DNA of 64,000 nt from Andalucia godoyi And28 (lineage: Eukaryota > Protista > Jakobida), in assembly GCA_009859145.1 (NCBI GenBank), contig VRVR01000016.1:214855-278854 (forward strand), in the 5' to 3' direction. The notes under the pieces were generated by a model. It was given only the letters and a program-made list of their open reading frames with translations, was not told the origin of the DNA and did not search any database. Both the position numbers and the translations under genes were made by a program. Shown piece by piece: positions 3,097 to 64,000 of the stretch; position 1 is the stretch's first letter, and each line of letters begins with the position of its first letter.

Positions 3097-3471
3097 TTAC
3101 AACCGCGCTATTCCAAACCACACAAACACAAATCAAACGCAGAACAAGTATGAAGAAGAAGAAAAGAAGATACACGAAAAATAGAAACACGAAAACACAA
3201 CGAGAAGAATTCGAATAATCAAAAAATAGTACCTGTACCTTCAACCCAGCGCTACCGTATATATCGAGAGGCGACTCGCAGAGACACACAAGAGAGTCAG
3301 AACGCGCGTTGAGACTTGAGACTGGAGAACCGTGAAAGAAACGTGTGTACTTTGGGCTTTCTCTTTTTTGGCTTGCAAATCACAGGCACGTTTCTTACGT
3401 ACTGCCGCAAGCGTAGAACTACTGCTTTGCTGGATTAAGCACGCTTGGGGGGCTAGGGAAAGTGTTCGTGC

Positions 3472-16931: not shown

Positions 16932-17433
16932 GAGAAGGGGAAAAAAGGATCAAAGAACGTAAGAATTTAGTACTGTCAGTCAGTGCGGAATTCGCGGGGA
17001 GGATTGGAATTTTGGAGTTTGGACAGCTTGCAAAAGGTAAAGGACTAATGAGGAAATCGGGGGCGTTGGGAAAAGAGGATTTGTACCTTTCACGAACCAG
17101 CATCAACTCACTCGCACAAAAAAGGTCACAAAACTTGGGGATCGCGCATTTTTTTAATCTTTTTTGCTACTGTGTTGTTACAGCAGCTGTTTTGGCGGGA
17201 AGGAGAAAGACGAAACATCACTGGTGTTCGCTGGGGGAGATGGAGACACGAACCTTGGCACTGTTTTATGAAGCACTCCGTTGTTTTGCGCCAGATCAAC
17301 CCTACTTTTCTTCTTTTTCTTCAATGTCCCACTATCGCTGTTCCTCGTTTTCTTGTTTTTCAGTGTTCCTCTTTCTTCTTTCACTTCATTTTGCATAGAT
17401 TCCATTCTCTACAAGACATACGAAAAACAATAT

Positions 17434-18480
17434 ATGAGTGCACAAGCATCACGAAACGGGCCAGCATCATCACAGATTGCGGCTGAAGAGCCTATGAACG
17501 AATCTGCAGCGCAGTCGTTTGAGTCCGTAGACCGACTGCAAGAACATGGCATCAACGCCGCGGATCTTAAGCGGCTGAAGGAGTGCGGGATTTTGACCGT
17601 GGCACGAGTTCTGATGACGACACGCAAGGACCTTCTGAACATCAAGGGCATGTCCGATGCAAAGCTCGACAAGCTTCTTGATGCTGCTGCCAAACTTTCT
17701 GGACCGCAGTTTGTGAGTGGTGTTGTGGCTCTGGAGAAGCGCAAGGAAGTCCTCAAGGTCACGACGGGCAGCAAAGCGCTTGATGATCTAATCGGCGGCG
17801 GCGTGGAGACCATGGCCATCACGGAAGTGTTTGGTGAGTTCAGGACAGGAAAGTCGCAGTTATCGCACACTCTCTGCGTGACTTGCCAGATGGACCCGTC
17901 GGACGGCGGCGGAGGAGGAAAGGCGATCTACTGCGACACAGAGGGCTGCTTCCGGCCCGAAAAAATCCGTGACATTGCCGAGCGGTTTGGACTTGATCCA
18001 GATGCCGCACTCGAGAATGTGCTGGTAAGCCGCATGTACACGCACGAACAGCAGATGGCGGCAATCCCCTTCATTGCGGCCCGCATGGCGGAAGACACCT
18101 ACCGCCTTCTAGTCATTGACAGCATCATGGCGCCGTTTCGAACCGACTTTTCCGGCAGAGGAGAGCTTGCAGACCGCCAGCAGAAACTCTCAAAATATCT
18201 CTCCCACCTCATCAAGATTGCAGAGGAGTTCAATGTCGCGGTATTCATCACGAACCAGGTGATTTCGGACCCAGGTGGAGGAGCCGGAGCAATGTTTGTC
18301 CAAGACCCAAAGAAACCTGCAGGCGGGCATGTCCTTGCGCATGCCAGCACTTGGCGACTCTATCTTCGCAAGGGGCGCGGTGAGCAGCGCATTGCAAAAA
18401 TCTACGACTCCCCAAGTATGCCGGAAGCAGAATGCATCTACCAGCTCTCCGGAGGCGGAATCATGGATGCGAAGGACTAA
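17434..18480 (+). CDS. DMC1: Meiotic recombinase Dmc1
   Basis: Walker [15 protein letters not shown]; [24 protein letters not shown]; [10 protein letters not shown]; [16 protein letters not shown]. These residues favour DMC1 over RAD51. Intronless, 348 aa. Confidence 0.9.
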
Positions 18481-18513
18481 GCAGAAAAAATTACCCCGCA
18501 TCCAACTTGGATG

Positions 18514-18685
18514 CCTGCATTGCTCACTGAGGATGCAAGACCATCACTAGTCATGCGTAATCAGTGTTGCAACCCGGGCCATGTCGCCATGGACGGGAAG
18601 GGGGGGGGGGGGGTAGGCCCCCACAAGCCTTGCTGGCGTTCTTAAGATAAATGCTCCGTGCTCCGTTTCCAATCTCGATCAATCG
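18514..18685 (-). ncRNA. Putative omegaRNA scaffold of copy 1
   Basis: Minus strand: GCC-A-GCAA-GGC, GGGGG-CCTA-CCCCC, CCCG-T-CCATG-GCGA-CATGG-CC-CGGG, TTGCAA, CACTGA...TCAGTG, ATGCAGG. The 5' limit is a guess. Confidence 0.62.
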
Positions 18686-19100
18686 GTGAGCCACTTTCTC
18701 AGCGTGACGCGTTGTTCCTGAGAAGGGTGCATTTTGATTCTGACGGCCCTAGCAGCAGGCGCTTTCGTGTCCTCAGTTGCAGCGATTGATGCACCTGGAG
18801 ACACGAGAGGAAGAGGCGATAGGCGTAGTGACACGTGGTCTCTTAGTAGGTCTGCGGGACCTAGGAGGCCCTGCATCGAGCGGCGTAGGCGTAGGCGAAT
18901 GCGTCATCCCAGCGCACTCACGCCCATATTTGAATAAAAGAGTGAAACCAAAAAAAGTGAAACCAACGAATGATAGAATAGATGGCTATGGATGCTGCGC
19001 TAAAGAGTGTCGAAAATGCAGAGCCTGTGTCGCAGGCTGAATTCTGGCCGAGCGTGCGTAAGCACGAATTCCAGTGAAGCAAACGTGCTAGTGTCGGCAA
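18514..19100 (-). mobile_element. Non-autonomous Fanzor2/IS607-TnpB derivative, copy 1 (66-bp left-end deletion, divergent 3' RNA end)
   Basis: Near-identical to 54684-55322 and 63474-64000 over its 5' part. Contains HTH motif RAVRIKMHPSQEQRVTLRKW and frameshifted IDRDWNGARSIYLKN. Left junction CCG|TTG; right end ATGCAGG. Confidence 0.82.
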
Positions 19101-19390
19101 CGGTGCAGAGATCCGGCAGTCGGCTTCCAAAATAAAGATTAACGGATTATTGTTCTATCATATTATTATTTTTTGTTCGACTCTGTTTCTTCAGTGTAAA
19201 AAAGAAAGCACAAGCAAGGAAAACGGAATAAGAAAGCAAGGAGGAAAAAAAAGGGAAAGGAAGAGAGAAAAGAAACCATATATCCGCATTCTACTACTGG
19301 TACGAACTCCTCTCATTAACGCCAGCGAACCCATATTCACGGCCAATTTTTTAACAGAGACTGTTCGAAGCAATAACGAGGTCTACGGGA

Positions 19391-21189: not shown

Positions 21190-21330
21190 GAGTGAGAAAG
21201 AGAGACTGCTTACTTGCTTCCTGTCGTACACGACTTTCGCAGATTCACCCTCGATTAAAACAAGGCACTCCGATTTTCGCTCCTCGCGTCTTTCTTATAA
21301 ATGAAGTAGAATTTTTGCAGGTTTGCGCTG

Positions 21331-21406
21331 TTTTTTGTTTTTGTTTTTGTTTTGTTTTTTGTTTTTGTTTTTGTTTTGTTTTTTGTTTTGTTTTGTTTTG
21401 TTTTTG
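21331..21406. repeat. (TTTTTG)/(TTTTG)n tract
   Basis: Direct reading; upstream of the zuotin gene. Confidence 0.85.
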
Positions 21407-21481
21407 TGATGAAATTTAACTTTCCCTTTGTTGTGTTTCCTTAGGTGTGGTACTCATAGCATTCAACGACCAACCGAACCC

Positions 21482-23587
21482 ATGGTGTTTCTGCTGGGCC
21501 CTGCTGGATTGGAGGAGACATCGACGTCTGCAGCGGCGGCGTCTGAGCTGCCGTTTTCGCTGAGACCGACTTTGCTGACGGTGCTGTGCATTGGAAATCG
21601 CTTTTCGAAGCTTGCACACGTTCACCATCCGCGGCTTCCAGATATTGCGTCTGCTTCTCAGCAGTCTCTAGATGATAGTGTGTCGGAATCGGACTACCGA
21701 CCTGGACTGGGATCTGTTTTGGACGCGGATTCCTACTCCTTTGCGGATGTCTCGGGAGCTTCGGAGCCTTCAGTTTACAAAACGGAAGATTTTTATGCGA
21801 TTCTTGGAATTCCAGATCTGAGGTTCCGTGCCTCCGAGTCAGAAATCCGCAAGGCATATCGATCTCGTGTTCTGGAAGTGCACCCAGACAAGATTTCCAA
21901 TGCCAATGCTGATGCATCATCGGCTGCGTCGTCTGCGTCATCGTCGTCGGTGAGCAGCCCAACTTCACCGAAGTCGAATCTTTTGAGCTCCGGTATGGAT
22001 ATTGACGAAGCGTTCAAGCAGCTTACGAAAGCACAAGAAACTCTTCTGGATCCAGTCCGGCGCCGAGCTCACGATTCGCAACTCGCCGAGACCATGTTTC
22101 CGGATGTTACGGATTCAGACGTGAATTCCGTCTTGTCAAAGTGCAAGAGTGCGGAAGTCGCCGTTCCAATCAAGATGGAAGGACGACCCGAGCCGCTGGT
22201 CGTGTCTCTCGTTCCCGCAGAAATATTTGTCTCTCTCTGGAGTCCATTGTTTGCGAGAATTGCCGTGTGGAGCGCTGAGCCCAGACCACCAAAGCTGTTG
22301 TCAAAGTCTTTTCCTGGCGTGGATAAGTTGATTGCAAGTAGAAAGGATGCACAAGATGTGCCCCCGGCCGCGTCCATCTCACCAGATTACTCTGCGGCTG
22401 ATGCATTCTACAAGTTTTATCTGCGATTTCGTTCCTGGCGGGATTTCTCTCATGAGCTCCCGGACGTTCTCGCTTCAATGTCCTCCGCAACTTCACGGGA
22501 TGAACGTCGCTTCCACCAGCAGGCGCTTGAGAAACATTCCAAAAAGCGGAAATTGGAGGCCGCTGCGATGGTTCTGAAGCTTGCTGAGCAGGCTCAGAAG
22601 AGTGACCCCCGGTTCGCACTTCGAAAGGCGCTGGAGGAAGCCGAAAAGGAAAATAAGAAGTGGCTAAAGCTCATGGAGAAGAAACGAGAGGAAGAGGAGG
22701 CTGAGCGCAAGAAGAAGGAGGACGACGATCGCAAGAAGAAGGAGGACGACGATCGCGTGGCGCTGAAGAAGGCAAAGGAAAACGAACAACGACAAATGCG
22801 CAGAGAACGCAAGCGATTCAAGGACAGCGTTTGGTTCCTGAAAGACGGACCACGCCTGGAGGGTTCCGATGAGCGAGGCTGGGCAGTTGTTTCAAGCATG
22901 GTGCACAAGGCATTGGTATCGGGGGCGCTCGATACTATCAAGCTTCCGAATCCCCTTCCATCTGGCCCTTCTCAGTCCCCCTCTTCCCCTTTCCCTAGTT
23001 CTACGTCGCTGGAAGATCTCGGAGAGGTTTCCGACGTAACATCGGTAACTGCTACACCCGCAGAATGCTCTGATTGCTTAGGACCGACAGCGTTTCCAAG
23101 TGAAGAGGAGATTGAGGATGTGTCTCGTCGGCTGACTCGACTTCAGCTGTCTGCATTGAATGACGCTCTTGCGCAAGTGTCAGCTGAGGAGCCGTCCACA
23201 GATGCAGATTCTTCGGACAGGACTTACAGGTCTACCAAAGAGATTCGTGGTGCTCTGGCACGCATTGGGTCCTTGATACTTGCTATTCGCGTACAGATTG
23301 CCCGCGTGAAGAAGGTGAAGGACGACGCAGAGGCTGCAGAACGCGAGCGGTTTCTTGCGGATCTGAAGGCCCGTGAAACCGCAGACGCCTCGAAGCCGAA
23401 ATGGACCAAACAGCAGCAGACGGAGCTCGAACAGGCACTGAAGAAGGTTCCTCCAAACGATTCAAAGAGATGGGAACGTGTCGCCAACATGGTTCCTGAG
23501 AAGACTCCTGCTGAGTGTGAAGCCCGCTTCCGCGATATGCTGGAAGCGTACAAGAAGAAGAAGGATCAAACTGTGACAAAGAAATGA
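21482..23587 (+). CDS. DNAJC2: Zuotin/DNAJC2 (MPP11) ribosome-associated J-protein
   Basis: J domain (DFYAILG ... HPDK), FRSWRDFS, charged coiled coil, C-terminal SANT (WTKQQQTELEQALKK ... RWERVANMV). Start uncertain. Confidence 0.85.
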   Translation: MVFLLGPAGLEETSTSAAAASELPFSLRPTLLTVLCIGNRFSKLAHVHHPRLPDIASASQQSLDDSVSESDYRPGLGSVLDADSYSFADVSGASEPSVYKTEDFYAILGIPDLRFRASESEIRKAYRSRVLEVHPDKISNANADASSAASSASSSSVSSPTSPKSNLLSSGMDIDEAFKQLTKAQETLLDPVRRRAHDSQLAETMFPDVTDSDVNSVLSKCKSAEVAVPIKMEGRPEPLVVSLVPAEIFVSLWSPLFARIAVWSAEPRPPKLLSKSFPGVDKLIASRKDAQDVPPAASISPDYSAADAFYKFYLRFRSWRDFSHELPDVLASMSSATSRDERRFHQQALEKHSKKRKLEAAAMVLKLAEQAQKSDPRFALRKALEEAEKENKKWLKLMEKKREEEEAERKKKEDDDRKKKEDDDRVALKKAKENEQRQMRRERKRFKDSVWFLKDGPRLEGSDERGWAVVSSMVHKALVSGALDTIKLPNPLPSGPSQSPSSPFPSSTSLEDLGEVSDVTSVTATPAECSDCLGPTAFPSEEEIEDVSRRLTRLQLSALNDALAQVSAEEPSTDADSSDRTYRSTKEIRGALARIGSLILAIRVQIARVKKVKDDAEAAERERFLADLKARETADASKPKWTKQQQTELEQALKKVPPNDSKRWERVANMVPEKTPAECEARFRDMLEAYKKKKDQTVTKK

Positions 23588-40805: not shown

Positions 40806-40877
40806 GGTCACGTGGCGCAATGGAAGCGCTTTGGACTTCGAATCCAATGGTTGCAGGTTCGAGTCCTGCCGTGATCG
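40806..40877 (+). tRNA. tRNA-Arg(TCG)
   Basis: Cloverleaf: acceptor GGTCACG/CGTGATC, D-stem GCGC/GCGC, anticodon arm TTGGA-CTTCGAA-TCCAA, T-arm GCAGG-TTCGAGT-CCTGC; oligo-T terminator follows. Confidence 0.93.
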
Positions 40878-41200
40878 TATATCTTTTTTTTATTTTAAAA
40901 TAAACCTTCGGAAGAGCGCAAGACAACAGGGGGGATTGTGCGATTTGCGCGTGTTCAGAGGACTTTTCCTTTTGGCTGAAAAAATGGCGAGTTTGTTGGT
41001 GGTGGTGGGCGTGAGATCATTTTTGCCGTAGGAAGGATGTATCTTTCTGACGTTTTTCTTTCAAATACTGCTTATGCCAGCAAAATGCTCGTGCTGGGGA
41101 AAAAGAGTCCCCCCGGACTGGCGGGAAAGCCTTTTTTGTTCGATGGGCGGCACCGGGTGTATGCATTCGAGGAAAACCTCGCGTCAAATCTGTCCGATAT

Positions 41201-41272
41201 GCTCGCGTGGCGCAATGGAAGCGCGTCTGCCTCCGACGCAGAAGGTTGCAGGTTCGATCCCTGCCGCGGGCG
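41201..41272 (+). tRNA. tRNA-Arg(CCG)
   Basis: Acceptor GCTCGCG/CGCGGGC, anticodon arm TCTGC-CTCCGAC-GCAGA, T-arm GCAGG-TTCGATC-CCTGC; oligo-T terminator follows. Confidence 0.92.
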
Positions 41273-41410
41273 TGTAATTTTTTTCTTTTTTTTTTGGTTT
41301 ACGTTTGTGTTTATGTTTTTCTCCCCTTCCTCTCTGCGATTTCGCGAGCGCCAGCATCCGTCACGTGATTTGAGGATTTGAGATGGTGAACAGCAGTCGG
41401 CAGGGACTAG

Positions 41411-51040: not shown

Positions 51041-51469
51041 GATGCACAAATCACGATAATCCACAACAAGGGCACAAGCAAAAGAGGAGGAGAAGAAAAA
51101 GAAGAAAAGAACTGGGACGCCGGACGGACGCATTCCAAAACATGAAAAGAAAAGAAAACATGCAAAGAATGCTTGTCCGACGGAAAATTGATGCAAGCTT
51201 CTGAGTTCTGCGCATAGCAGGACCTCAAGCGTCGTTTTCTTCCTCTTCCTTTTTATGGTCTACTCGAGGGCTTGCTGCTTTTTTATATTTTTCACATGTT
51301 TTATTTGGGTTTTTTTTGGCTGGGTATTGTTCTGCGTAGGTGCATACTAAGGTGGCATTGGTTGTCTCCGGTCTGAGGGGTGCCTGTGTTATGTAGGATT
51401 CCTACTAAGAGTGTTTTTAACGAATTGACTGTGTGTTTGCCCGACGCAGCCACAGTGAAGGCAGGCAGA

Positions 51470-54295
51470 ATGGGCTTGCAGAATCAGACGGTTGCCATTT
51501 CGGACGAAAGTGTAAGGCCAGATGGACAGTTCTCTTCGCAGTTGATAGAATTGGACTCAGATGCATTATTTGACGCCGTTGAAACAGTTGAATGCGGCGG
51601 AGCCAAGCACACGGCTTCCCAGGAGCTTGCGGAAATCCACTGTATTTTGGAAAACTCAACGGGCTCGCAGAGTTACTTGACATCGTCGCCTACACGGCAG
51701 CCCCCGGGCCGCCTCCGGAGCCCTGCTAAAAGAAGTCTCTTCGCGGCAGCTCGAGCTGTTGCTCCGGCGTCCTCACCGGAGACCGCTCCGTCAATCGATC
51801 ATGGCGAGCCCTCCAGGATCATTTCGTTCATGCCTGACGAATACTCGCGTGTCCTGCGGAGCCGCGGCGTGAGTCGTCTCCATCCTTGGCAGTCGGACCT
51901 ACTTTGCGCGGCCAAAAAGTATCATTTGCATGAGCGAAATCTTGTTTACTCGACTCCAACATCTGCGGGAAAGAGTCTTGTTGCTGAGACTTTGCTGGTG
52001 CATGCGGTGTGCTCCGAGTCTTCCCTTGGTCTCCTAGTTCTTCCGTTCGTCAGTATATGCGAAGAAAAGTACCAGTCTCTGACAGTCTTTGGGCGGTGCA
52101 TGGACTTTGATGCAGAAATTTATGCTGGATCAAGGGGAAGCTTTCCTCCTCCGAAAGGCGGCCGTTTGATATTAATTGCGACGATAGAAATGGCAAACGC
52201 CATTTTGAATTCTTTGCTGGAAGACGGTCGGTTGAATGAATTGTCCTGCGTTGTTGTTGATGAATTGCACATGATCGGGGATGGGTCATTGCGTGGTGCT
52301 TTATTGGAATCCTTGTTAATCAAACTGCGACTGTACCAGTCGTCCACGGCCAGCTTTCGATGCCAAATAATAGGAATGAGCGCTACTCTTCCTAACCTGA
52401 CCGAGATTGCAACTTGGCTTGATGCGGATCTCTATCAAGGGTCATTTCGCCCTGTTCCTTTGGAAGAATTTGTTGTTTTTCCGTGGGAGAAAGAAACATG
52501 CGCAGTGTCCCTGGATAGAAAACGCCGGTTTCCACTAGACTTGACAGTCGTTGATCCAGGAAAAAGGTTTGACTCTGAAGTATTGGTCATTGCTAGTCTG
52601 ATTAAGGGAGATTTCAATTGTTTGGTGTTTTGTCCTTCGAAGTACGCCTGCGAGTATACTGCCAAGATTCTAAAGTTACTTTGCCCACTGGACGTTTCTG
52701 ATGCGCGAAGCCTTCTTTGCTCAAGAATCGAGTACGAAATTGGTACCAAAATGAATGAAGTTCAACGGGATGCGATCCTGTACTCAGGAATCGCTTTTCA
52801 TCATTCCGGACTCACTGCTGGAGAGAGAAGGCTTGTTGAGGATGGTTTCCGAAAGCGAGTGCTCAGAGTCTTGTGTTGCACATCGACGTTAGCTGCGGGT
52901 GTTAATCTCCCTGTGCGCAGAGTGATTTTTCGTGGACTGGTGATAGGGAAAGATATTCCATTAACCGCCTCGAAGTATGCTCAAATGGCTGGAAGAGCGG
53001 GTCGGGCAAACCTGGATACCAAAGGGGAGTCTTTTGCAATTGTTCGCAGGAAAGATCTTGCAATCCTGGATGACATTTCCAGAATTCGTGTTCTTGAATC
53101 TTCGGAAAGAATGAATTCTTCTTTTCTGGCGCTCTTCCACTCGCTTAACGTCACCGCATCTTCTGTTTCAACTCTTCCAGAAGAAGTCTTTTTGCCTTTT
53201 CAGCGATTGATTTTAGATTGTCTGTCTGCTGGACTGCTCTCTTCGGATTCTGAGCCTCCGTCTTTGAGGAAGCTTCTCGATTTTTCATTGTTTTATCAGC
53301 AAGCTTCTCGGGACCAACAAATCTTAATCATCTCCATCATGAATTCTTGTGTGGATGTTCTGGTGGAAAAGGGATTTCTACGAAAACCAACCTCAGGATC
53401 AGATGTGTTATTCGATATTCTCCCCTTGGGCTTGGCTGTGGCGAAATCGTCGTTTGCGATAGAGGATGCGCTGTTCCTGTATCAAGAGCTTCGGAAGGCA
53501 ATTCGCCACGGATTAGTTCTGGAGAATGAGCTGCATCTTTGCTATTTAAGTACCCCTGTGTCTTCGATGATTGATCCGGACTGGAAATTGTTTGGGAAGA
53601 TTCTTGATCGGCTCCCTGAAGAAGATCAGCGTATATTTGAGATTTGTGGAGGTGACCATGCACTGGTTGCTCGGTTTGCCTTCCAACCTCCCTCCACATC
53701 CATGTTTCCTTCTGCGGCCGGTGCTTCCGCATTGCGATCTGCGTGCGCAGCTGCACTGAAAAATGAAAGCGAGCAGAGAACCTTTTGTTGTCGGCGATTT
53801 TATAATGCCCTCATATTGAGAGATGCTGTCAACGAAGTCGGGGTAGACGAATTGTGCGTCCGATTTGGGACCAGTATGGGCAGAATTGAGATGCTGATGA
53901 CAATGGCAGGCAGCTTTGCCGTCCAGATGATTCGTTTCTGCGGCAGAATGGAATGGTGGGCATTGGAGGCCTGCTTGCTTGCGTACGCCAAACGAGTTGA
54001 GTTCGGTGTTAAGGGAGACGTTATTGAATTATGTGAGATCCGAGGAGTAGGGCAGAAAAGAGCTCGAATGCTGTACAAGAATGGAATCAGGTCAGTTGAG
54101 GATGTGGCCAAACTGTCGAAGGATCAACTGATCCGTCGGCTTGGACATCTAGTAGATGTGGATATGGTGCTTTCTAGCGCTCGACGCATTTGTGAGCAAC
54201 GAAGCCGTCGAGCACGCATGGAAGCCGAACGAGTTGCTGTGAGTTTGACGCAAATCGTTGGTGATGATGTCTCGTACGACCCAGAAGTGGCTTGA
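51470..54295 (+). CDS. HELQ: HELQ/POLQ-type superfamily-2 DNA helicase without a polymerase domain
   Basis: YSTPTSAGKS, VVVDELH, GMSATL, LVFCPSK, FHHSGL, TSTLAAGVNLP, QMAGRAGR, C-terminal HhH (IRGVGQKRARMLY). HELQ versus POLQ-N is not resolved by eye. Confidence 0.8.
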   Translation: MGLQNQTVAISDESVRPDGQFSSQLIELDSDALFDAVETVECGGAKHTASQELAEIHCILENSTGSQSYLTSSPTRQPPGRLRSPAKRSLFAAARAVAPASSPETAPSIDHGEPSRIISFMPDEYSRVLRSRGVSRLHPWQSDLLCAAKKYHLHERNLVYSTPTSAGKSLVAETLLVHAVCSESSLGLLVLPFVSICEEKYQSLTVFGRCMDFDAEIYAGSRGSFPPPKGGRLILIATIEMANAILNSLLEDGRLNELSCVVVDELHMIGDGSLRGALLESLLIKLRLYQSSTASFRCQIIGMSATLPNLTEIATWLDADLYQGSFRPVPLEEFVVFPWEKETCAVSLDRKRRFPLDLTVVDPGKRFDSEVLVIASLIKGDFNCLVFCPSKYACEYTAKILKLLCPLDVSDARSLLCSRIEYEIGTKMNEVQRDAILYSGIAFHHSGLTAGERRLVEDGFRKRVLRVLCCTSTLAAGVNLPVRRVIFRGLVIGKDIPLTASKYAQMAGRAGRANLDTKGESFAIVRRKDLAILDDISRIRVLESSERMNSSFLALFHSLNVTASSVSTLPEEVFLPFQRLILDCLSAGLLSSDSEPPSLRKLLDFSLFYQQASRDQQILIISIMNSCVDVLVEKGFLRKPTSGSDVLFDILPLGLAVAKSSFAIEDALFLYQELRKAIRHGLVLENELHLCYLSTPVSSMIDPDWKLFGKILDRLPEEDQRIFEICGGDHALVARFAFQPPSTSMFPSAAGASALRSACAAALKNESEQRTFCCRRFYNALILRDAVNEVGVDELCVRFGTSMGRIEMLMTMAGSFAVQMIRFCGRMEWWALEACLLAYAKRVEFGVKGDVIELCEIRGVGQKRARMLYKNGIRSVEDVAKLSKDQLIRRLGHLVDVDMVLSSARRICEQRSRRARMEAERVAVSLTQIVGDDVSYDPEVA

Positions 54296-54324: not shown

Positions 54325-54506
54325 CGCCTGCATTGTACAGCAAGCATCGCTAATCATTGCTGACCAATCCATAGGCAGCCTTGCATCCAAACCGAGTGTG
54401 AATTCAATTCAGAAGAGGGTAGGCCCCAGTACACCGAAAGAGTTCTTCAAATATACATACTGCGCACACAGCTCCGATGTCGACCCAGGCATGATGGACA
54501 CAGGAA
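54325..54506 (-). pseudogene. Old decayed Fanzor/TnpB 3' end with an omegaRNA-like module
   Basis: Minus strand reads FLCPSC-L-GRHRSCVRSMY-(+2 nt)-LKN, which aligns codon by codon to DRDWNGARSIYLKN. Followed by GGGG-CCTA-CCC, GGATGCAAG and ATGCAGGCG. Confidence 0.62.
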
Positions 54507-54683
54507 TGACGATGAATTAAAAAAGACGACCGGAATAGCATTTTCTGAAATGTCTGGATGTGGGGGCTAACGTAGGGCAACAGAGCGGGGTCGTTCCCTT
54601 TTCACGTTCTCTCTTTTGTGCAGGTTGGGGAGGTGACTCAATGTACCCTCAACTGCCACACTCTGCGGTTTTGTTTCTGGTCG

Positions 54684-54835
54684 CCTACATAATACACTGA
54701 ACATGCATGCATATCTACGAATAGACATGCATGTTCAATCTTGCATCCCGTTGCCGGGAACGGGATAGGTCCCTAACACGCCTCACGGCGCTCTTCAGAT
54801 AAATGTTCCGCGCTCCGTTCCCAATCTCGATCATT
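54684..54835 (-). ncRNA. Putative omegaRNA scaffold of copy 2
   Basis: GCGCC-GTGA-GGCGT, GGGA-CCTA-TCCC, CCCGTT-CCCGGC-AACGGG, a 12+4-bp hairpin with TTCG loop (54698-54737), and terminal TAGG complementary to CCTA. Confidence 0.68.
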
Positions 54836-55322
54836 CTGTGAGCCACTTTCTCAGCGTGGCACGTTGTTCCTGAGAAGGGTGCATTTTGATTCTGACGGCC
54901 CTAGCAGCAGCAGGCGCTTTCGTGTCCTCAGTTGCAGCGATTGATGCACCTGGAGACACGAGAGGAAGAGGCGATAGGCGTAGTGACACGTGGTCTCTTA
55001 GTAGGTCTGCGGGACCTAGGAGGCCCTGCATCGAGCGGCGTAGGCGTAGGCGAATGCGTCATCCCAGCGCACTCACGCCCATATTTGAATAAAAGAGTGA
55101 AACCAAAAAAAAGTGAAACCAACGAATGATAGAATAGATGGCTATGGATGCTGCGCTAAAGAGTGTCGAAAATGCAGAGCCTGTGTCGCAGGCTGAATTC
55201 TGGCCGAGCGTGCGTAAGCACGAATTCCAGTGAAGCAAACGTGCTAGTGTCGGCCAGTATTGACCGTGTCTGTTTATGTATGCTTCCTTTCGTATGCATG
55301 ACAATGACGTGTCATCATTCAA
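54684..55322 (-). mobile_element. Non-autonomous Fanzor2/IS607-TnpB derivative, copy 2 (both ends visible, 639 bp)
   Basis: CCG|TTGAAT left junction, HTH motif, frameshifted DRDWNGARNIYLKS, structured 3' end, ATGTAGG|CG right junction. No TIRs seen. Confidence 0.85.
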
Positions 55323-55405
55323 CGGCTTGTCCGGAGAATCCCAATGCATTGTTTTCTTTGTCCAGTGCCGTTGTTGTGCTGTAAATATTTTCGTGCAAGA
55401 ATAGA

Positions 55406-56290
55406 ATGTCAGAACGTCACACCAGCCAAGCAGCCCGTTCCAGATGGAAGCTGTTGTCTCAGTTTATTTCGCAGAAACGGTCCATCGACTGCAGCTGTCC
55501 CAGTGCCCAGTCTGTTTCTGTGAAACGGCTGCTCAACTTTGGATTCTTGAAGTTCACGGAACATGCCTCGGACCAGAATCCGTCATACAATGTTCGCCAA
55601 TACTCATTCAGTGACGAATTTTCTGTTTCGTTGTTATCAAGAAAAAATACAATTCCAACCTTATCTGAAGTAAACAGTGTCATTGGCACTGCGTTTGACA
55701 CCACTGGTCTTATCACTGTATGGCCTGCTGAGGAAGCTCTGTCGTATTACATATTTGAAAATGTCGCGGATTTTCGTGGGAAAAGTGTCTTGGAAATTGG
55801 TTGCGGCTGTGGGCTTGCGGGTTTGGTGGCTGCCAAAGGTGGTTCTGGCTTCGTGTCCCTCACAGATGCGAACGAAGATGTTGTCAGGCTATGTGACGAA
55901 TCAATATCTATGAATCCCGACGTACAGAATTGCACTGCATCTGTCCTGGCTTGGGGCAAGCTCGAAAATTTCGCTACTTTCGACTTTATCGTTTCTGCGG
56001 ACTGCTTATACTTTGAAAAATCGCACGCTCTCATGCATGACCTCCTTTCTTCAGCATTGGCCAAGAATGGCACCGCTCTCTTCGTATGCCCTCGGCGAGG
56101 AGCATCTTTAGAAGCATTTGTACACCTCCTGAACGGTCAAAAAGTATTCAAGGTGTGCGTGCTGGAAAATTGGAATAGACACATTGATAACTGCATTGCG
56201 GACACGATGCAAAAGAACATGGATCTGTTTGACAAGAACTTGCATAACCTATTGTTGATTACAGTGGAGAGACTGTCTCCCCAGGGGTAA
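55406..56290 (+). CDS. CAMKMT: Calmodulin-lysine N-methyltransferase-like (METTL21 family)
   Basis: ARSRWKLL, FDTTGLITVWPAEEALSYY, VLEIGCGCGLAG, LTDAN, SADCLYF, CPRRG. Confidence 0.82.
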   Translation: MSERHTSQAARSRWKLLSQFISQKRSIDCSCPSAQSVSVKRLLNFGFLKFTEHASDQNPSYNVRQYSFSDEFSVSLLSRKNTIPTLSEVNSVIGTAFDTTGLITVWPAEEALSYYIFENVADFRGKSVLEIGCGCGLAGLVAAKGGSGFVSLTDANEDVVRLCDESISMNPDVQNCTASVLAWGKLENFATFDFIVSADCLYFEKSHALMHDLLSSALAKNGTALFVCPRRGASLEAFVHLLNGQKVFKVCVLENWNRHIDNCIADTMQKNMDLFDKNLHNLLLITVERLSPQG

Positions 56291-63332: not shown

Positions 63333-63473
63333 GTAAAGGGTTCAGTTCTGTTGGGACTGCCTGAAAATCAACTGCAAAAAAGAAAAAAAAGATGTCCGTT
63401 TGGTTTGTCAACTTGTCGCGCGGAATCGCGGGTCCTCAGCGAAGATTACGTTTTGACCACAATTTGAAAATCG

Positions 63474-64000
63474 TTGAATAGTGACACGTCATTGTCATGC
63501 ATACGAAAGGAAGCATACATAAACAGACACGGTCAATACTGGCCGACACTAGCACGTTTGCTTCACTGGAATTCGTGCTTACGCACGCTCGGCCAGAATT
63601 CAGCCTGCGACACAGGCTCTGCATTTTCGACACTCTTTAGCGCAGCATCCATAGCCATCTATTCTATCATTCGTTGGTTTCACTTTTTTTTGGTTTCACT
63701 CTTTTATTCAAATATGGGCGTGAGTGCGCTGGGATGACGCATTCGCCTACGCCTACGCCGCTCGATGCAGGGCCTCCTAGGTCCCGCAGACCTACTAAGA
63801 GACCACGTGTCACTACGCCTATCGCCTCTTCCTCTCGTGTCTCCAGGTGCATCAATCGCTGCAACTGAGGACACGAAAGCGCCTGCTGCTGCTAGGGCCG
63901 TCAGAATCAAAATGCACCCTTCTCAGGAACAACGTGCCACGCTGAGAAAGTGGCTCACAGAATGATCGAGATTGGGAACGGAGCGCGGAACATTTATCTG
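63474..64000 (+). mobile_element. Non-autonomous Fanzor2/IS607-TnpB derivative, copy 3 (runs off the window)
   Basis: TCG|TTGAAT left junction; almost identical to the reverse complement of copy 2; HTH motif 63894-63953; DRDW motif from 63964. Confidence 0.85.

Follow-up and report, generated by a model that had tools for sequence, protein, structure and literature searches.

A repeated element in the Andalucia godoyi window

We analysed a 64-kb window on contig VRVR01000016.1 of the Andalucia godoyi assembly GCA_009859145.1; the window is the whole stretch of DNA under study, and coordinates given without a locus name refer to it. It carries a repeat of about 0.64 kb in three copies, named A, B, and C, which sit between different genes, together with a weak fourth relic, D (Table 1). 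The retained order is a left end, a leader of about 290 nt, a stub of 66 codons, the last dozen or so codons of the lost gene, a guide-RNA (omegaRNA) scaffold, and a right end reading ...AGGCG. Its sequence argues strongly that the repeat is a non-autonomous, internally deleted IS607-type Fanzor2 transposon of the clade of Naegleria lovaniensis Fanzor2 (NlovFz2), and we hold this account of its origin and anatomy to be very probable.

An earlier sequence-only reading of the window had reported a repeat of about 0.6 kb in three copies, which the alignment of A, B, and C bears out. The left ends given there hold, and the 3′ end had been placed 2 nt too early, the terminal CG (B) or CA (A) being part of the element. 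The copies had also been described as keeping only the ends and a guide-RNA module; both are indeed kept, but the word "only" goes too far, as about 290 nt of leader and 66 codons persist as well.

Table 1. Features of the repeat copies in the 64-kb window, with strand and main characteristics. ORF, open reading frame; HTH, helix-turn-helix; TAM, target-adjacent motif.
Feature	Position	Strand	Description
Copy A	18512..19100	(-)	Deletion junction and frameshift (+1) as in B; 66-nt left-end deletion; variant 3′ module
Copy B	54682..55322	(-)	Complete 641-nt non-autonomous element, left end TTGAAT... to right end ...GTAGGCG; from repeat alignment and junctions
Copy C	63474..64000	(+)	Equals B from left end to RuvC-III remnant, save left-end positions 7-8
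Relic D (tentative)	~54325-54486	(-)	Degenerate 3′ fragment, RuvC-III region to right end CAATGCAGGCG
5′ leader and left end of B	55032..55322	(-)	Near-terminal inverted repeat AATGAC-AC-GTCATT; T-rich stretch before ATG
Remnant ORF of B	54831..55031	(-)	66 codons, ends TGA
RuvC-III remnant of B	54793..54835	(-)	N-DRDW-(+1 nt)-NGARNIYLK
HTH remnant of A	18688..18780	(-)	...APAARAVRIKMHPSQEQRVTLRKWL; best six-frame match, E 6.2e-5
omegaRNA (reRNA) scaffold of B	54682..54793	(-)	Found by covariance models built without any Andalucia sequence
omegaRNA-like module of A	18512..18641	(-)	Second variant; H2b longer by a structure-preserving insertion; pseudoknot with one A.C mismatch
3′ flank of B	54661..54681	(-)	ACCAGAAACAAAACCGCAGAG, directly past right end
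TAM position of A	19101-19103	(-)	CCG
TAM position of B	55323..55325	(-)	CCG, directly 5′ of left end
TAM position of C	63471-63473	(+)	TCG

Remnants of a Fanzor2 nuclease

The N-terminal peptide of the repeat reads in a single frame as RAVRIKMHPSQEQR(A/V)TLRKWL, and a deletion breakpoint lies directly after W-L, where the relatives read on GTARWTYN. Residues 34-64 of the ORF in copy B (54840-54932) comprise the basic linker and the first helix of the Fanzor2 HTH domain, TEDTKAPAAARAVRIKMHPSQEQRATLRKWL, and this first helix is all of the domain that is found. The RuvC-III codons that follow are GAT CGA GAT TGG, an extra G, and AAC GGA GCG CGG AAC ATT TAT CTG AAG. All three copies carry the extra base, which in B is one G of the run 54820-54822. 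The frameshifted RuvC-III motif is all that is left of the nuclease signature; a complete RuvC D-E-D triad and a TNB domain are absent.

Searches of Pfam with trimmed peptides returned two TnpB domains as their sole matches, each at the correct end of its profile: PF12323 (HTH_OrfB_IS605), positions 3-24 of 47, E 0.085, and PF07282 (Cas12f1-like TNB, the TnpB C-terminal domain), positions 49-60 of 60, E 0.16-0.2. Because this evidence depends on trimmed peptides, we added a less biased test, in which a family profile of 560 positions, built from 120 relatives of NlovFz2, was run against all 2308 stop-to-stop fragments from the six reading frames of the window. The three copies took the top three places with their N-terminal remnants (profile positions 161-191, E 6e-5 to 8e-5), and NGARNIYLK of copy B ranked fifth (E 0.79). 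Once corrected for the frameshift, the stub matched the profile at 30.3 bits (E 2.4e-8) in two collinear pieces, 161-191 and 527-548 of 560, from which it follows that about 335 profile positions (192-526) have been deleted. BLASTP of the conceptual mini-protein against NlovFz2 likewise gave two collinear matches, at residues 115-137 (E 3e-5) and 474-486 (E 0.004).

NlovFz2 as a query has 4384 relatives in the protein collection; the 120 of these that were listed carry HTH_OrfB_IS605 and TNB domains, many of them also OrfB_IS605. When these 120 Fanzor2 proteins were searched against the window by tblastn, nothing was found besides the remnants. The element peptides had no match in NCBIfam or among the PDB sequences, and PHROGs returned a single weak transposase match at a consistent position. 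The leader of B, presumably the promoter and 5′ untranslated region (UTR) of the lost gene, had no Pfam match in any of its six frames and no relic of the transposase TnpA by tblastn.

As read from these alignments, one internal deletion took the WED and REC domains, RuvC-I, RuvC-II, and the zinc finger, and joined the first HTH helix to RuvC-III. The shared deletion junction and the identical +1 frameshift indicate one founder for all copies. By its sequence, then, the Andalucia repeat is a derivative of Fanzor2 and not a nuclease gene.

A putative guide-RNA module at the 3′ end

The scaffold of copy B begins with GAG, hairpin H1, the block GUU(A)GGG-ACCUAU-CCC (H2a), and hairpin H2b, and continues with UGCAAGA, a long hairpin H3, and the tail UAUUAUGUAGGCG. 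A pseudoknot of 5 bp pairs the H2a loop CCUAU with GUAGG of the tail, and the scaffold in B is complete, with four helices and the pseudoknot. Its fold z-score is -2.9. The 3′ region running to the right end thus has the several stems and the pseudoknot of an omegaRNA.

We compared this region with the loci of five relatives: P0008 (L011, L012), P0006 (L013, L014), P0009 (L015, L016, L017), P0012 (L018), and P0097 (L003). A common plan emerged in the relatives and in A and B, consisting of GAG, H1, GUUGGG-N6-CCC (H2a, a 3-bp helix), H2b, UGCA(A/G), a long H3, and a tail ending AGGCG. B has three sequence blocks and four hairpins in common with the omegaRNA published for NlovFz2 and with P0006, P0008, P0009, and P0012 in their 3′ regions, while the stem sequences vary between organisms with their pairing kept.

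Two covariance models were built without Andalucia sequences: R1 from L011, L015, and L018 only, with a structure set by the analysis, and R2 from those three together with L013, L014, and L003. The R1 search of the window covered both strands with filters off. Copy B (54682-54793) was the top match of the window to both models, full-length each time, with 32.4 bits (E 2e-7) for R1 and 40.6 bits for R2 (E 1.9e-9), and A was second by both (R1 14.4 bits, E 0.025; R2 17.6 bits, E 0.0043); these E-values are rough, as calibration was shortened. R1 also detects the omegaRNA of L013 and L014 and of the untrained locus L003 (E 8e-14). No relevant Rfam family was matched.

RNAalifold on a plain MAFFT alignment recovered H1 and H2a alone, and a structural alignment was therefore built by hand. 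In it, 91% of cells are paired, a figure that is partly high by construction because the arms come from each sequence's own predicted fold; with registers slid by 1-3 columns, 39-46% are paired. Compensatory changes occur at 36 of 58 pairs. The pseudoknot provides a test independent of folding, since both of its column sets are fixed by sequence anchors: the H2a loop CCUxy faces the tail x′y′AGG, 39 of 40 cells pair, and covariation is seen, one position having UA/AU/GC and the other UA/CG/UG, with the sole mismatch in copy A. On this comparative evidence, the 3′ module is homologous to the experimentally defined omegaRNA of a Fanzor2.

By analogy with that system, the 21 nt directly past the right end of B would be its guide position. 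No matches of the three putative guides were found elsewhere in the window. L011 and L012 represent the same full-length Fanzor2 locus in two samples and differ (L011 3845-3870, L012 3845) by an indel whose length is about 21 nt, or about 26 nt by eye; its start coincides exactly with the right end ...GTAGGTG, the expected site of a guide.

At L003 the R1 match (3342-3464, +) overlaps the last ~70 nt of the Fanzor2 ORF of P0097 (gene end 3413), and no end motifs are obvious there by eye, though the covariance model detects the omegaRNA. The P0097 gene stands among densely packed short genes in metagenome contigs of 34-45 kb, possibly viral. In the Andalucia window, weak covariance matches (~10-11 bits, E 0.2-0.5) also lie opposite the stub ORF, at 54840-54973 (+), 63823-63956 (-), and 18688-18818 (+); they are probably a spurious GC-rich hairpin that recurs because the copies are identical.

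Ends of the element and transposon class

The left junctions read CCG/TTGAATGATGACACGTCATT in B and TCG/TTGAATAGTGACACGTCATT in C. The left junction CCGTTGAA equals the first 8 nt of the annotated Naegleria left-end (LE) motif, CCGTTGAAGCCAAATGAACAATT. For NlovFz2 the TAM was determined experimentally as CCG, and the annotated LE motif reads CCGTTGAAGCC... (PMC10432273). The right end of B was set by the covariance-model matches; AGGCG at this place is common to B, NlovFz2, L014, L015, and L018, and the short contigs L016, L017, and L018 end exactly at the right end. The sample consists of three left junctions, flanked by CCG, TCG, and CCG, and two right ends, GCG (B) and GCA (A).

Inverted terminal repeats were sought by local alignment of the left end with the reverse complement of the right end, which gave CATGCATA (CATGCAT) only. 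No target-site duplication was seen at the junctions, where no systematic search was made. Neither the element nor the rest of the window contains a TnpA (tblastn E > 8; six-frame Pfam scan). Among the relatives, L015 has a 227-aa MerR+Resolvase gene (TnpA) overlapping the Fanzor2 start, and L011 has a recombinase C-terminal fragment at the same place, which together mark the family as IS607-type.

On the protein remnants, the module, and the class, the sequence-only reading proves sound. Its two peptides, extra base included, read as it gave them in all three copies. The first had been likened to the HTH_OrfB_IS605 N-terminus of TnpB/Fanzor2, in agreement with Pfam, BLASTP, and the family profile; the second had been taken for RuvC-III, which PF07282 and the profile place at the very end of the TnpB C-terminal domain, and the profile check that it had proposed places both in the TnpB/Fanzor2 family jointly. 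The hairpin-rich 3′ end, interpreted there as a guide-RNA module, matches the covariance models, and the Fanzor2/IS607 assignment is upheld by the NlovFz2 clade as the closest and by the serine-recombinase TnpA upstream in L015 and its fragment in L011. The ghost copies that it mentioned for Fanzor1 are indeed described, from Spizellomyces punctatus (PMC10432273).

The motif YCGTTGAAT occurs 3 times in the window against 1.6 expected and is not rarer than chance. One occurrence, at 21461-21469 (-), TCGTTGAAT, within the start of ORF 21428-23587, has no further left-end similarity and is probably due to chance. A left-end lookalike, CCGTTAAT, at 19138-19145 (-), about 35 nt upstream of the A junction, also shows no further similarity.

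Relations among the copies and their surroundings

Copies B and C, in inverted orientation, are identical at 527 of 529 positions. Both mismatches are adjacent, at left-end positions 7-8, where B has GA (55315-55316) and C has AG (63480-63481); the next 519 bases are identical, and the flanks are unrelated right from the left junction. So small a difference points to very recent movement. Copy C is cut off at the window end, at the base directly before a 695-N scaffold gap that lies inside the copy (L002 18596-19290; window 64001 onward). The 2.3 kb of scaffold past the window end hold this gap and then an unrelated gene. The repeat probably broke the assembly here.

Copies A and B are identical at 378 of 378 aligned bases over B element positions 69-450, and past position 450 the identity falls to 92, 82, 76, and 65% toward the 3′ end. 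This mosaic, with its sharp loss of identity from the HTH remnant to the right end (18512-18872 vs 54682-54872), suggests that two subfamilies, each with its own omegaRNA module, have recombined, by exchange or by conversion. Copy A also lacks 66 nt just inside its left end, keeping TT alone after CCG; GGCA forms its right end, and 14 consecutive C at 18600-18613 (-), between helices H2a and H2b, have no counterpart in B. With its left-end deletion, its right end in CA, and its pseudoknot mismatch, A looks disabled.

Relic D begins 195 nt past the right end of B in the same orientation, and its variant and right end resemble those of A. The covariance models alone do not give it significance (R1 11.4 bits, E 0.17; R2 9.4 bits, E 0.81); aligned to A, it scores 50 against 33 ± 5.5 for shuffles, whose maximum is 49 (z ~3). 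It looks decayed.

The right end of A lies 32 nt past the stop codon of Rad51 (17281-18480), on the opposite strand, and that of D lies 30 nt past the stop codon of a POLQ-like helicase (51380-54295), also on the opposite strand. That both lie so close to the stops of DNA-repair genes may be due to co-option, to a preference in insertion, or to chance where genes are so densely packed. Copy B, at its left end (55322), is 84 nt upstream of the ATG of a methyltransferase ORF of 294 aa (55406-56290). Elsewhere in the window, two tRNA-Arg genes with anticodons TCG and CCG lie about 400 nt apart at 40806-40877 and 41200-41273 (+), and a long (CAAAA)n-type microsatellite occupies 21330-21400, just upstream of ORF 21428-23587.

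Comparison with known systems

NlovFz2 has KSLKIRLYPNEQERTTLNQWMG at the start of its N-terminal domain and DRDINGARNILLRFLTTHRISF at its C-terminus; its omegaRNA starts at the stop codon, with a scaffold that ends ...TTTAAATAAAGGCG before the variable guide, and across its omegaRNAs a shared scaffold end ...AAAGGCG is followed by about 17-21 variable nt (PMC10432273). The Andalucia element resembles it in the left junction CCGTTGAA, in the CCG that occupies the TAM position, in the N-terminal pair KIRLYPNEQERTTLNQWMG and RIKMHPSQEQRATLRKWL, and in the C-terminal pair DRDINGARNILLR and DRDW-NGARNIYLK. Both omegaRNAs begin near the stop codon, contain the blocks GUUGGGNCCU..CCC and UGCAAGA, include a long terminal hairpin, and have AGGCG as the scaffold end; the leader, too, is of the kind found there, of 300-460 nt without a transposase gene. 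Naegleria and Andalucia both belong to Discoba. In contrast to NlovFz2, the Andalucia copies are frameshifted and have lost about 335 positions of the nuclease profile; their hairpin stems differ wholly in sequence, with pairing kept, their GC content is much higher, and their pseudoknot pairs CCUAU with GUAGG instead of CCUUU with AAAGG.

ORF-less elements of a related kind are known from the Fanzor1 "ghost" Spu-1 of S. punctatus, which comprises 134 loci of about 550 nt with both ends and a working omegaRNA; these ghosts were proposed to widen the guide repertoire of nucleases encoded elsewhere, and their function in trans was demonstrated (PMC10432273). The Andalucia repeat shares with them a multi-copy state, a length of about 0.6 kb, conserved ends and omegaRNA region, the absence of a nuclease ORF, and different 3′ flanks, and it therefore has the features of a ghost. 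It differs in class, being Fanzor2/IS607-type with no inverted repeats found, whereas the Spu ghosts belong to Fanzor1 and have 30-nt inverted repeats. Unlike them, it retains N- and C-terminal codons that reveal its origin, and it is known here from its sequence, whereas action in trans was shown for the Spu ghosts.

IS607 elements insert by crossover at a dinucleotide that matches between the left flank and the right end, and the reRNAs of IS607 TnpB and of Fanzor2 share a conserved pseudoknot formed with the final nucleotides of the scaffold; in ISXfa1 the reRNA has several stem-loops and absorbs the right-flank dinucleotide into the scaffold (PMC10711439). The Andalucia element is consistent with such a crossover in what appears to be a CG dinucleotide at the left flank and the right end (GG in ISXfa1), apparently taken into the scaffold here too, and it agrees with the pattern in its stem-loops, its pseudoknot at the scaffold end, and the TnpA of its relatives L015 and L011; unlike the IS607 elements, it has neither TnpA nor TnpB, and its host is a eukaryote. 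Bacterial miniature inverted-repeat transposable elements (MITEs) and palindrome-associated transposable elements (PATEs, from IS200/IS605) are short, keep only their cis-acting ends, and depend on a transposase in trans. They derive from insertion sequences with terminal inverted repeats or from Y1-transposase elements, whereas the Andalucia element goes back to a serine-recombinase/Fanzor2 element and resides in a eukaryotic nucleus. It was also considered as a classical MITE and rejected, as the alignment of its two ends gave no terminal inverted repeats of that class and no target-site duplication was seen at the junctions, where the search was not systematic.

Points against the assignment and alternative explanations

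Several observations weigh against our account. The two Pfam matches are individually below threshold, and untrimmed six-frame translations gave no Pfam match. The RuvC-III reading requires a frameshift; uncorrected, NGARNIYLK alone matches, at E 0.79. The edges are defined by only two left and two right junctions, and B and C differ (GA against AG) at left-end positions 7-8. On the RNA side, the covariance E-values are rough and the pairing score is in part built in, as noted above; a sequence-only DNA profile (nhmmer) ranked B first in the window at a non-significant E of 0.65, so that structure is needed to reach significance. No full-length parent was found either. The window contains no full-length Fanzor2 or TnpA; the concatenated remnants, run as a word-indexed query against 5.8 billion proteins, returned nothing at E <= 0.1; exhaustive HMMER on 1.84 billion representatives with the 66-aa ORF returned only low-complexity matches to its P/S/A-rich leader; scans of viral and metagenome contigs with back-translated peptides confirmed no relative; and metagenomes, searched with a DNA pattern of three omegaRNA blocks, gave 0 matches. 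None of 10 small element ORFs was present in the protein collection by exact look-up. The collection records only two annotated genes across the 20.9-kb locus L002 and lacks three genes of the window, and its gene set for A. godoyi appears sparse.

The A. godoyi nuclear genome measures 20 Mb and is gene-dense, intron-poor, and repeat-poor, and its assembly left out several transposon- or viral-like subtelomeric scaffolds (PMC7050145); the parent element may therefore simply be unassembled. This bears on the most serious alternative, to which we give a substantial but less than even chance: the copies would be inert relics of the same origin, the nuclease gene and perhaps the transposase having gone from the genome, with no guide RNA made or used and the omegaRNA region surviving either through a cis requirement for the right end or as a stretch that the founding deletion happened to miss. 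The failure of every search to find a parent fits such an end, as do the frameshift in the stub of every copy, the state of A (left-end deletion, right-end change of CG to CA, pseudoknot mismatch), and a relic D that is barely recognisable. Against it stand the omitted subtelomeric scaffolds, the scaffold of B, which retains all helices, conserved blocks, and the pseudoknot at 40.6 bits, and the difference of 2 in 529 between B and C in different contexts, which implies very recent movement or copying.

The remaining alternatives explain less. Segmental duplication, gene conversion, or assembly error in place of transposition would account for the position of C beside an assembly gap and for the pattern between A and B, where 100% identity over ~380 nt gives way to sharp divergence as in recombination or conversion; yet the homology of B and C stops at the known Fanzor2 left-end junction with unrelated flanks, the right end of A is the end of the covariance-model match, and the three copies stand between different genes, which makes this explanation highly improbable. 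Equally remote is retention by the host of the element or its 3′ module as a 3′ UTR, terminator, or regulatory RNA: the spacing of A and D behind the Rad51 and helicase stops and of B ahead of the methyltransferase would suit it, but there are just the two 3′ cases, genes are packed so tightly in this genome that whatever inserts between them adjoins one, and A and D are the most decayed copies. Least probable of all is membership in another class (a solo long terminal repeat, a Helitron, a MITE with terminal inverted repeats, or a Y1-moved IS200/IS605-type element) with TnpB-like motifs arising by chance. Both ends of the repeat do carry small hairpins, like those of IS200/IS605 and Helitron2 elements, and the Pfam matches are individually sub-threshold and absent from untrimmed translations; set against this are the joint E of 2.4e-8 for two collinear protein remnants, the independent RNA model at E 1.9e-9, the lack of a terminal inverted repeat beyond CATGCAT and of a target-site duplication at the junctions (not systematically searched), and the presence in the relatives of a serine recombinase instead of a Y1 enzyme.

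Proposed mechanism

Descent from an IS607-type Fanzor2 transposon by internal deletion remains the preferred account, and the full explanation, which refers mainly to origin and anatomy, is in our judgement probable. In it, a serine-recombinase TnpA from a full-length element elsewhere would move the mini-element, recombining its ends with a target at a CG dinucleotide after a pyrimidine; a crossover of this kind would account for the left-flank YCG as well as for the CG that closes the element on the right. We lean modestly toward such mobilisation in trans.

If the retained leader acted as promoter, transcripts crossing the stub would reach the scaffold and the flank beyond it and so yield an omegaRNA with the 3′ flank as guide. 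A Fanzor2 supplied in trans could then use it to cut the empty site (YCG plus flank), favouring copy-back of the element, which would correspond to the homing role proposed for TnpB. A working guide-RNA role today is conceivable but rather doubtful.

A bolder version is unlikely, in our view: the mini-elements would form an active, nuclease-less "guide library", each omegaRNA guided by its own flank, with the Fanzor2 encoded only in unassembled virus- or transposon-like subtelomeric DNA or by an infecting giant virus. If it were true, guides and nuclease would be physically apart, as in CRISPR, but in a eukaryote, and the A/B mosaic would reflect the exchange of guide-RNA modules between subfamilies.

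Significance for Fanzor biology

A search of the literature library found no paper linking Andalucia godoyi with Fanzor, TnpB, or IS607, and the repeat appears to be the first sign of a Fanzor2/IS607 system in a jakobid. ORF-less elements of such a kind are already known, but not from the jakobid lineage, and the current picture of Fanzor biology is extended by this finding, not changed. The surviving N- and C-terminal codons give a direct view of a "ghost" arising from a nuclease-bearing parent by a single internal deletion. For the NlovFz2-like clade, with its 4384 relatives, the omegaRNA is described with four helices and a covarying pseudoknot and is now searchable even where no ORF is left. 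With two near-identical copies in a gene-dense, repeat-poor genome of 20 Mb, A. godoyi offers a practical case for studying the expression of ORF-less omegaRNA cassettes and their use in trans.

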